From: Vitrella brassicaformis CCMP3155
Taxonomy: Eukaryota; Protista; Chromerida
Direction of reading: 5' to 3'
DNA: 64,000 nucleotides
Assembly: GCA_001179505.1 (NCBI GenBank)
Contig: CDMY01000770.1
Location: forward strand, 186,001-250,000
The notes beneath the pieces were generated by a model, which worked only from the letters and a program-made list of their open reading frames with translations, was not told where the DNA came from and searched no databases. Every line of letters starts with the position of its first letter. Position 1 is the first letter of the stretch. Of the stretch, positions 59,894 through 63,696 are shown one piece after another. Both the position numbers and the translations under genes were made by a program.

Positions 59894-61493
59894 ATGGCAA
59901 GAGCGCGTCACATCAGGCCTGCTTGGTTGCCGCACATCGCCTCGACATTGCCGCGCTGCAGTCTGCCGAATCGACGCTTCTCGAGCGCTGCAGCGGCATC
60001 CGTCAGACAGACGGCGTCGGCTACGCCACCTGCGAATCTGCGATTTGCCGTTGGCGGCGACCATGTGAAGATATTTCCAGCTGGCGCTGAAGATTCGTCC
60101 GTATCACTCTCCCACGAGCAACTGCGGGAAAACTGTCGATGCTCTGAGTGCTACATCGGCCTGGCGCATCAGAGAAAGGGCGTGGAGATCGGCCAAGGCG
60201 TCAAGGTCGAGTCCATCCGTCCCCTGCCGGCCGTGCCCGGGACTGGTCATGAGGTGTGGGTGGAGCTGACATTCTCAGACGGTAAGGAAGGAACATAAAA
60301 GAGACCACACGCACACGGATGGATAAGCAGGCTGATGCGCGTACGTCGATTGCTGCAGGTCACCATGGCATCCTTCCCATCGACCTGACCCCGCCCTTGC
60401 TGCCCACAAGAATCGCAAAGACCCTCTGGCAACACACCCCACAGGCAGCAGACCCCATCGACTACACGACCACTCTGCATGACGACGCCCACCTGCTCGC
60501 CCTCTATGAGCAGCTGGAGAGGAACGGCCTCGTGAGGGTCTTCAACGCGCCCAGGACAGCGGGGGCGGTCAAGACTCTGGCTGAGCGTCTTGGCGGCATG
60601 GTCCGGCCCACAGTGTATGGCGAGACCTTTCACGTGACGGCCAACCGTGCACCAGACAACCAGGCTTACACAAGTCTAGCGCTGCCGCCGCACACCGACC
60701 TGCCCTACCTTGACTCGCCGCCGGGTGTGTTCCTCTTCCACTGCCGCAGCCCTGCTCAGCAGGTGATCACACTGCACAGACCACTCATGCATCGCTGTCC
60801 GTGTGTCGACGTCGTGTGTATCTGCGTGCATGTGCACAGGGCGGTGGTCTGTCGACCTACGTTGATGGCTTCTATGTGGCGGAGAAGATGCGCCGAGAAC
60901 ACCCGGAGGAGTTCGAGACCCTCACGCAAGTCAAGGTAGGCGTGCCCGACCACTGCGCTGCAGCGATTGGCGAGCACATACACTACAACTCTGTGTGCTG
61001 TTCAGGTGCCCTTCCGTGACGTGCCCGAGCACCACGAATGGGACCTCATGGCAGGTACCAATCAGCCGAGAGGGCGACAGCACCTCATCCATGAGCGGCG
61101 CCCTTCATTGATTGTCTACCTGCTGTCCTTTCAGAGCACAGCACCATTGCCGTGGAGCACCGCATCATCAAGAGGATCACTTTCAACGAGGCCGCCAGAT
61201 ACTCACTCCTGGCCTGGGCCGTCACCACGCCACAGATGGACGCCTTCTACTCGGCCATTCGGACCTTCAGGCGGCTCGTGAGTGACCCTTCACACACGCA
61301 CCACATCGCCATGGGTGCGGGGGAGATCACCGTGTTCGACAACCACAGAGTGCTGCATGGGCGGACGGCATTCACTGGGGGAGGGCGGGAGATGGAGGGC
61401 GGGTATTTGGAGTGGAGCAACGTCAGGGGGTTCATGCGACGGATCATGAGGCGCCACATGGATGGAACAGCTGGTGGGTACATGCACACGTAG
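59894..61493 (+). CDS. Gamma-butyrobetaine/trimethyllysine dioxygenase family (TauD-like Fe(II)/2-oxoglutarate dioxygenase) with mitochondrial-type transit peptide
   Basis: N-terminal LRENCRCSECY plus DGHHG (Zn-binding GBBH N-domain pattern). Catalytic motifs: AYTSLALPPHTDLPYLDSPPGVFLFHC, STYVDGFYVAE, RITFNE, ITVFDNHRVLHGRTAF. Arg/Ser/Ala-rich leader with RRFSS. Five exons join in frame. Confidence 0.92.
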
Positions 61494-62466: not shown

Positions 62467-63561
62467 TCACTGGATGGATTCGTGCCTCTTGGCCTTCGGC
62501 GTCTTGACGCCCTCTTGCTTCAGGTAGCGCTGCACCACTATGTCCTTGCCGCCATTCTTCGGACGCAGCCTGTAGACAACCATACACACAAACCACAACA
62601 CACAAGACAACACAGCCATGTGCACACGCATCGCACCCACTCAGCTGTCGTTCGTTCCTCGCCAGATTGACTGACTGACCTGTATTCGATGTGGAGCATG
62701 TTGCCGTAGGTCTTGTCGGCGATTATGCGCCTGGTCTCGATCATGCTGCCCAGCTTGTCGTGCTCGCGCACATTCTGGAGGGCCATGTGTGGTCGTTCAG
62801 AGCCGTCGATGGGGTAGGGGCCCGCCTGGCATTTGGCGGTCCATACGCCGCAGTCGGGGTCATCGCAGGGGAAGGTCTCGCCGTCGAGGCGCCACACCAT
62901 GAGCCGCTCGCTGACCACCGGCAGGTGGGCGATGATGTGCAGGAAGCGGGCGTCGTCCTTCTTGAAGTCGATCGAGATGGGGAACACCGCGCTGTTCATG
63001 ACCTTGCGCTTCATCCACGCTATCCCCAGCGCCTTGAATAGCTCCTCGAACGGGTCCGATCGCTTGATGACCACCACCCAGCGGCCCACCAGCGCCTGAG
63101 CCAGACGCTGCAGAGTGGCCAGGTCGGTGACGGGCGGGGTGCGGGGGTCCACGACGGATGCCACGGGTGAGGAGGTGGGGGAGGCGGACGTGACGGAGGC
63201 GCCCTGGGTCGTGCTCGAGGCCGTCTGGGCGGGCGAGAGAGCTGCACGAACGCAACACAGGGTGGTGAGGTGACCGGTGTCATCGGCCTTCTCTCTCCTC
63301 ACCATCGTTGGAGATGGTGCGATGGAGGCGATTGATGGGGGAGGTAGCACGGACGACCACACCGCCGCCTGAAAGACGCACACGGAACAAGCCCTGTGTC
63401 GGTGTGTGCCAGTATGTGGTGCCGACATGTAATCTCTCTCACTCACCCTCGTTGCTGTTTTGTCGGAGCTCTTCCAGCGTCCGCGAGAGCTCCTTCCTGA
63501 GCTCGGGCACATCCTTGGCCACCTCCTCGAGCAGGCAGACCGGAATATCACACGGTGCCAT
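62467..63561 (-). CDS. Protein with N-terminal helical/Ser-Thr-rich region and C-terminal FABP/calycin-like domain, 4 exons
   Basis: Spliced: MAPCDIPVCLLEEVAKD..|GGGVVVRATSP..|ALSPAQ..LVGRWVVVIKRSDPFEELFKALGIAWMKRKVMN..ETRRIIADKTYGNMLHIEY|RLRPKNGGKDIVVQRYLKQ..*. This matches the iLBP G-x-W..F-E-E-x-x-K-A-L-G..RK N-terminal signature and the terminal strands. Confidence 0.7.
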
Positions 63562-63673
63562 CTCTGTAAACGTTGGGAGATATCAAGACCGATGCGAAAC
63601 GATGAAAAAAGGCAGTAGAGAACTGTTTGGCCTTCCCCGTCGTTTGCTTGTGTTGAAGACACAGACGCCGATG

Positions 63674-63696
63674 TCTAGGGTCTAGGGTTTAGGGTT
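63674..63696 (+). repeat. Three telomere-like heptamers (TCTAGGG, TCTAGGG, TTTAGGG) in a divergent promoter
   Basis: Sequence tctagggtctagggtttagggtt; TTTAGGG is the plant/apicomplexan-type telomere unit. Confidence 0.6.

Follow-up and report, generated by a model that had tools for sequence, protein, structure and literature searches.

Gene structure and transcription

The gene described here lies on the minus strand of Vitrella brassicaformis CCMP3155 contig C770, at positions 62467-63561 of the window, which is the whole stretch of 64,000 nucleotides analysed (C770:186001-250000, part of a contig of 267 kb). Its product is a protein of 281 amino acids (aa), of which residues ~98-266 were shown to form a divergent domain homologous to the animal intracellular lipid-binding proteins (iLBPs; FABP1-12, CRBP and CRABP, the cytosolic branch of PF00061). 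Overall, the data are probably best explained by an expressed gene of the iLBP fold, with a putative fatty-acid-type ligand and a role as a cytosolic lipid chaperone. A FABP-like beta-barrel had been placed at 62467-63130 in a preliminary description of the sequence, and these positions are those of the domain, whose first residue is 98 (63131).

A four-exon model was read from the sequence and the table of open reading frames (ORFs), with coding segments at 63561-63447, 63368-63303, 63241-62680 and 62569-62467 (stop codon included). Its translation is identical, residue for residue, to P0001 (281 aa), a protein that is unnamed or uncharacterised in NCBI, UniRef, MMETSP and EukProt and that was used for all steps on the full-length protein. 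In contigs from four public runs, which belong to three studies, introns of 78, 61 and 110 nt, all with GT..AG ends on the minus strand, have been spliced out. Since the model is identical to P0001 and spliced contigs were found in four runs, the Vitrella gene is real and transcribed. The features of the gene are as follows.

63562..63669, minus strand: 5' untranslated region, at least this far; a spliced contig of run X1 reaches 63669, and the ATG is at 63561-63559
63447..63561, minus strand: exon 1, coding for residues 1-38 and the first base of codon 39; a predicted helix, not conserved in homologues
63369..63446, minus strand: intron 1, 78 nt, GT..AG; joint with CT..AC ends on the plus strand in 4 runs
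63303..63368, minus strand: exon 2, 66 nt, linker; from spliced contigs and P0001
63242..63302, minus strand: intron 2, 61 nt, GT..AG; from spliced contigs
62680..63241, minus strand: exon 3, coding for a linker rich in Ser, Thr and Pro, followed from residue 98 (63131) by the greater part of the FABP-like domain; from spliced contigs and P0001
62570..62679, minus strand: intron 3, 110 nt, GT..AG, phase 2, inside strand I between Arg248 and Leu249; from spliced contigs
62467..62569, minus strand: exon 4, coding for the end of strand I, the I-J loop, strand J (to ~62515) and a basic tail; stop codon at 62467-62469

Residues 1 to ~97 of P0001 thus comprise a non-conserved helix and the Ser/Thr/Pro-rich linker, and no similarity between Vitrella and Chromera P0005 was found upstream of the domain. 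By inspection, no signal peptide is present: the N-terminus, MAPCDIPVCLLEEVAKDVPELRKE, is acidic and lacks a hydrophobic core. The domain part of exon 3 carries an N-terminal helix, strand A, helices I and II and strands B to I. The strings on which the FABP-like assignment had been founded, LVGRWVVVIKRSDPFEELFKALGIAWMKRKVMN and ETRRII...GNMLHIEY, are present in the minus-strand translation of the exon at 62680-63241. The continuation towards the C-terminus, HIEYR|LRPKNGGKDIVVQRYLK, is read only when the 110-nt intron at 62570-62679 is removed, as it is in the four runs and in P0001.

Sequence homology to animal iLBPs

Residues 95-281 were searched against all PDB chains with phmmer. The search returned 59 sequences, all of them CRABP, FABP or myelin P2 (best E 0.0026), and their alignments were in register at the N-terminus, covering chain residues ~5-51 with strand A, both helices and strand B. 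The N-terminal likeness to FABPs that had been proposed by eye is therefore better than chance. A profile built from the family alignment A1 (31 domains) listed 135 PDB sequences, of which the best 60 were all iLBPs (top E 9e-6), with intestinal FABP aligned across profile positions 15-127; the proposed affinity to calycins is thus borne out at the profile level.

A bridging sequence was found in P0042 (146 aa; JGI metagenome 3300030738, L007), which matches the Vitrella query at E 1.9e-5 and the FABPs of squid at 5.6e-7 (full length), Schistosoma at 1.6e-5 and Drosophila at 3.8e-5. P0042 is of canonical FABP size and has no Pfam match; of the ligand triad considered below, the two Arg positions and the aromatic residue are retained in it.

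Several differences set the Vitrella domain apart from the animal iLBPs, with which it shares 14-23% identity, below Pfam detection. It is ~35 residues longer, the added length being due to an additional helix at the N-terminus and to a long F-G hairpin, and its family has its own DPDCGxW and ETR motifs, with Leu in place of Tyr128. Classical iLBPs are small single domains of ~127-140 residues, whereas the Vitrella domain has ~165-170 residues inside a protein of 281 aa. The domain length had been called comparable to that of FABPs, which holds only roughly when ~165-170 residues are set against ~132. The host lineage is Myzozoa, not Metazoa.

Predicted structure

An AlphaFold2 (AF2) model of the full protein from its single sequence was poor, with a predicted local distance difference test (pLDDT) score of 36.9, and was replaced by an alignment-based model. 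With alignment A1, residues 98-281 were modelled at a mean pLDDT of 93.8 and a predicted template modelling score of 0.86 (model m34c182186878). In domain numbering, the model has a helix at 4-14, a strand at 16-20, helices at 29-34 and 39-47, and nine further strands at 51-57, 60-68, 76-81, 87-91, 95-106, 115-124, 128-139, 143-154 and 161-169. The predicted topology is that of iLBPs, a 10-stranded antiparallel barrel with a helix-turn-helix lid, plus one extra N-terminal helix. The barrel anticipated in the preliminary description is thereby recovered, with its 10 strands and the helix-turn-helix between strands A and B.

The model was compared with known structures. In a Foldseek search of the PDB the top 50 matches were all FABPs (E from 2.8e-7, probability 1.00), with template modelling (TM) scores normalised by target of 0.71-0.86 and identities of 16-23%. 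A structural comparison was also made over 48,161 chains, of which the 50 best were considered, and gave the following Z values.

Human CRBP IV: Z 17.2, root-mean-square deviation 1.7 Å over 131/133 residues
C. elegans LBP-8: Z 17.2
UnaG: Z 16.4
Drosophila FABP: Z 15.1
Tardigrade SAHS: Z 15.0
Bile-acid-binding protein: Z 14.5
Intestinal FABP: Z 14.4
Oplophorus luciferase subunit (nanoKAZ): Z 13.8
OlmO, nitrobindins, phycobilin lyase CpeS, Rv0813 and Rv2717c: Z 9-10.5
Lipocalins: Z 8 or less

Structures of FABP, CRBP and CRABP therefore match far better than any other fold, as had been expected from the sequence. The ESM Atlas holds its own model of the protein, whose neighbours are FABP12 and cytosolic FABP clusters, with TM scores of 0.83-0.87 by target.

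Other neighbours in the ESM Atlas are unnamed and without Pfam domains, and come from Myxococcota (170 aa), Chlorophyta (201 aa) and Ascomycota (195 aa); in Basidiomycota the neighbours are LCCL-domain proteins (706 aa). The unnamed clusters match the model over 149-162 residues, with TM scores of 0.70-0.78 by query. Judging from these models, FABP-shaped barrels of the longer type may be widespread outside animals.

These neighbours bear on the possibility that the domain is an independent FABP-like calycin, or is related to nitrobindin/THAP4, Rv0813 or the unnamed fungal and algal barrels and not to animal iLBPs. Nitrobindin/THAP4 and Mycobacterium Rv0813c/Rv2717c are likewise 10-stranded calycin barrels outside animals. 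Such an origin would agree with the lack of a Pfam match, with the ~35 extra residues relative to iLBPs and with the larger share of the model that is matched by the unnamed clusters of Myxococcota, Chlorophyta, Ascomycota and Basidiomycota. However, there is a gap of 7 units in Z, and the sequence matches are exclusively to iLBPs. Because of this gap and these matches, convergence or membership of the nitrobindin-Rv0813 group is considered very improbable, and the iLBP fold and the homology to animal iLBPs are held with high confidence.

Distribution of the family

An exhaustive phmmer search with the Vitrella query over 1.84 billion cluster representatives gave 54 representatives at E <= 0.001, of which 26 were at E <= 1e-10. 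The phyletic range given here comes from this one single-sequence exhaustive search and from word-index searches. Named members were found in Chromera velia, Voromonas pontica, Eimeria stiedai, Eimeria flavescens, Eimeria media and Cyclospora cayetanensis, and further named members in Rhytidocystis, Siedleckia, Polyplicarium, Trichotokara, Blabericola and Platyproteum. Several Cryptosporidium members (C. felis, C. canis and the chipmunk genotype; P0037, P0060-P0062) carry the NCBI name 'fatty acid binding protein'. The domain defines a distinct unnamed family in chrompodellids and Apicomplexa. No named match from a dinoflagellate, Toxoplasma or Plasmodium was obtained in these searches, whose reach does not allow absence to be concluded. 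The family alignment and the Cyclospora domain, when used as queries in word-index searches, likewise returned only Cryptosporidium and Eimeriidae, which does not prove that Toxoplasma and Plasmodium lack the domain.

The barrel of dinoflagellate luciferase, or luciferin-binding barrel, belongs to another alveolate lineage and is described as FABP-like. A bearing of the Vitrella protein on the origin of the luciferase fold had been suggested on this ground. This suggestion was not supported: none of the 50 best of the 48,161 chains compared was a dinoflagellate luciferase, none was matched by sequence or profile, and none of the named homologues obtained in these searches is from a dinoflagellate.

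The homologues span lengths of 159 to more than 1,100 aa. Many members are proteins of 313-1,137 aa that have the domain as their C-terminal module and no Pfam domain in the remainder. When 10 long and 10 short homologues were searched, none had a lipocalin or FABP match, and Pfam matches were found only on two long homologues, to unrelated domains: HTH_CHD1_Hrp3 and FliH on the repetitive P0002, and FYVE on P0032. In P0032 (1,444 aa, Logan assembly) a FYVE zinc finger, a type that binds phosphatidylinositol 3-phosphate, occurs together with stretches that partially match the domain's N-terminal half. This architecture hints at a use of the module in endosomal lipid biology.

Two further copies occur in the Vitrella genome. 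The paralogue P0009 on contig C297 (L002/L004, G000:C297:51326-51995) has 375 aa and 39% identity, and has an intron after ...QYR, at the same position as intron 3 of the gene studied here. The third copy, on contig C385 (L005, G000:C385:307883-308020), is divergent, lacks DPDCGxW and has a long C-terminal extension.

A maximum-likelihood tree of 31 domains, which has neither an outgroup nor animal sequences and leaves the Vitrella rows unresolved, contains three supported clades: a chrompodellid clade, Eimeria with Rhytidocystis, and a gregarine-type clade. The tree is compatible with vertical descent within Apicomplexa and chrompodellids. The Cryptosporidium set (P0037, P0060-P0062) forms a long branch and is 24-27% identical to Vitrella. 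It belongs to the same family by profile (E 1e-24 to 1e-37) and has the GxW, KR, GxW-turn and ETR motifs in common with Vitrella, whereas its annotated sequences end at ...IRYR, without strand J and its Arg. This end, found in the Cryptosporidium-type sequences P0037, P0045 and P0062, falls where intron 3 of Vitrella parts strands I and J. Either strand J and its Arg are truly lacking in these three, or a small last exon was overlooked in the gene models.

The extent of the family also bears on whether the whole finding could be an artefact, that is, a chance likeness seen by eye, a sequence that is not a gene, or contamination from an animal. The lack of a Pfam match and the low pLDDT of the single-sequence model would be in keeping with this, but spliced transcripts were present in several runs and the gene sits on a 267-kb Vitrella contig. 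Moreover, two paralogues lie in the same genome, orthologues occur in Chromera and Voromonas, the clades of the tree roughly follow taxonomy and the alignment-based model is of high confidence. An artefact is scarcely credible, and this explanation, contamination included, was ruled out because of the introns, paralogues, orthologues and transcripts.

Conserved residues and the putative ligand

Conservation was counted in the 31-sequence alignment A1 and is given in protein numbering. The main conserved elements are as follows.

63078..63086, minus strand: G113-x-W115, strand A; 30/31 and 31/31; equivalent of the GxW at the start of FABPs
63006..63011, minus strand: K138-R139, helix II; 29/31 and 30/31; aligned with the basic pair of CRABP2 helix II
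62841..62861, minus strand: D188-P-D-C-G-V-W194, E-F turn, family-specific; a portal turn in FABPs
62730..62738, minus strand: E229-T-R231, strand H; E 30/31, R 30/31; candidate equivalent of FABP Arg106, register uncertain by one residue
62527..62529, minus strand: R262, strand J; 27/28; aligns via P0042 with the carboxylate-binding Arg126 of FABPs

G113, W115, K138, R139, D188, D190, G192, W194, E229 and R231 are conserved in at least 90% of the rows covering them. S122, G133 (between the helices), G170 of the C-D turn PxG (28/31), G181 and G225 are also nearly invariant, and P168 of the same turn (27/31) and R219 (27/31) are well conserved. The ligand portal of FABPs is framed by helix II, the C-D turn and the E-F turn, so that the portal is where the most conserved loops of the family map.

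In FABP3/4/5/7 and the CRABPs the carboxylate of the ligand is held by Arg106, Arg126 and Tyr128 (FABP4 numbering). When P0042 was aligned with squid FABP, its R142 fell at the position of Arg126 and its F144 at position 128. In alignment A3, R262 of Vitrella corresponds to R142 of P0042, and L264 to F144. By these two alignments, the strand-J Arg of the FABP triad appears to be conserved and the Tyr not.

We infer a ligand role for the domain because R262 aligns with the carboxylate-binding Arg126. The barrel would most likely enclose a hydrophobic ligand with a carboxylate head, a fatty acid or a similar carboxylate lipid being slightly more probable than not. The head group would be anchored by Arg262 on strand J and perhaps also by Arg231 on strand H. 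Lys138-Arg139 of helix II, the PxG turn between strands C and D and the DPDCGxW turn between strands E and F would frame the portal for ligand entry. On this reading the protein would serve as a lipid chaperone in the cytosol, and the long homologues would carry the domain as a lipid-binding module at the C-terminus.

The name 'fatty acid binding protein' given at source to the Cryptosporidium members was counted in favour of this reading. Several observations weigh against it. Searches with Pfam PF00061 (lipocalins and cytosolic FABPs) and PF14651 (Lipocalin_7) at E up to 10 gave no match for the exon, the protein, the domain or the 31 family members. A profile of the C-terminal half alone found no FABP in the PDB, so that the similarity is limited to the N-terminal half; a C-terminal match to FABPs claimed previously does not stand as sequence, although it does by fold and by the transitive alignment of the last strand. 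Tyr128 of the FABP triad is Leu264 in Vitrella. The register of R231 against Arg106 shifts by one residue between alignments, which would flip the side chain between the inside and the outside of the barrel. Finally, FABP-fold proteins with other roles were among the top structural matches, namely UnaG, which binds bilirubin, the SAHS stress protein and the Oplophorus luciferase subunit.

These proteins illustrate the serious rival, in which the fold and the homology are the same and the ligand or role is another. Possible ligands would be bilins or other tetrapyrroles, such as UnaG binds, carotenoids or retinoids, and sterols or compounds resembling bile acids. In versions with no ligand role, the domain might protect against stress as SAHS does in tardigrades, mediate protein interactions, or be enzymatic as the Oplophorus luciferase subunit is. 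However, the family also occurs in non-photosynthetic gregarines, Cryptosporidium and Eimeria, and a photosynthetic pigment is therefore unlikely as the common ligand. Furthermore, the strand-J Arg that binds the carboxylate in FABPs and CRABPs is kept in 27/28 members. Another ligand or role on the same fold is thus rated as rather unlikely, and the binding of a fatty-acid-type lipid as the better explanation.

Relation to previous views of the iLBP family

It has been reported that the iLBP family seems restricted to metazoans and is not reported from protists (PMC6646235), that iLBPs arose after animals had split from fungi and plants (PMC3796463), and that Toxoplasma has no FABP (PMC8929637, PMC6199492). 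Confinement to metazoans does not hold for the family described here, since its host is Vitrella, an alveolate and thus the non-animal eukaryote that had been supposed, and its relatives are found in chrompodellids and Apicomplexa. In the literature searched, no paper describing an apicomplexan, Cryptosporidium or chromerid FABP was found. What is new is a branch of the iLBP superfamily in Myzozoa that is invisible to Pfam, longer, marked by its own motifs and often fused to other sequence. What was already known is that annotators of some Cryptosporidium genomes name members 'fatty acid binding protein', which tempers the novelty.

The occurrence of the family in chromerids and in early-branching and eimeriid Apicomplexa places the origin of the fold's lineage, or its transfer, outside animals. 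We tentatively propose that the iLBP/FABP family is not an animal invention, and that a sister family was present in the chrompodellid-Apicomplexa ancestor, perhaps tied to the unnamed fungal, green-algal and myxobacterial families of ~170-200 aa. Under this proposal, on which we would not yet rely, the domain could be the parasites' own fatty-acid chaperone and, in the long proteins, a lipid-sensing C-terminal module. If true, a parasite chaperone in Cryptosporidium, Eimeria and Cyclospora would contradict the reliance of apicomplexans only on ACBP, SCP2 and host FABPs. The family offers a candidate parasite-encoded fatty-acid carrier for these three lipid-scavenging genera. Unseen by Pfam and marked by a conserved portal motif of its own, it is now open to modelling and testing.

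Neighbouring features

Upstream of the gene, a telomere-like repeat, tctagggtctagggtttagggtt, lies at 63674-63696 of the window, just beyond the farthest 5' contig end (63669). It may be an interstitial telomeric repeat or a promoter element of the 'telo-box' type.

On the other side, a convergent neighbour gene on the plus strand (59894-61493) was found in three ORF pieces, with a GBBH-like N-terminal domain and TauD/TfdA dioxygenase domains. It resembles the gamma-butyrobetaine and trimethyllysine hydroxylases of carnitine synthesis, which is curious beside a putative fatty-acid binder. The spliced contigs of the gene studied here run past its stop side, below 62300, by 0.8-2.1 kb. This extension represents either a very long 3' untranslated region or merged convergent transcripts with the dioxygenase gene.
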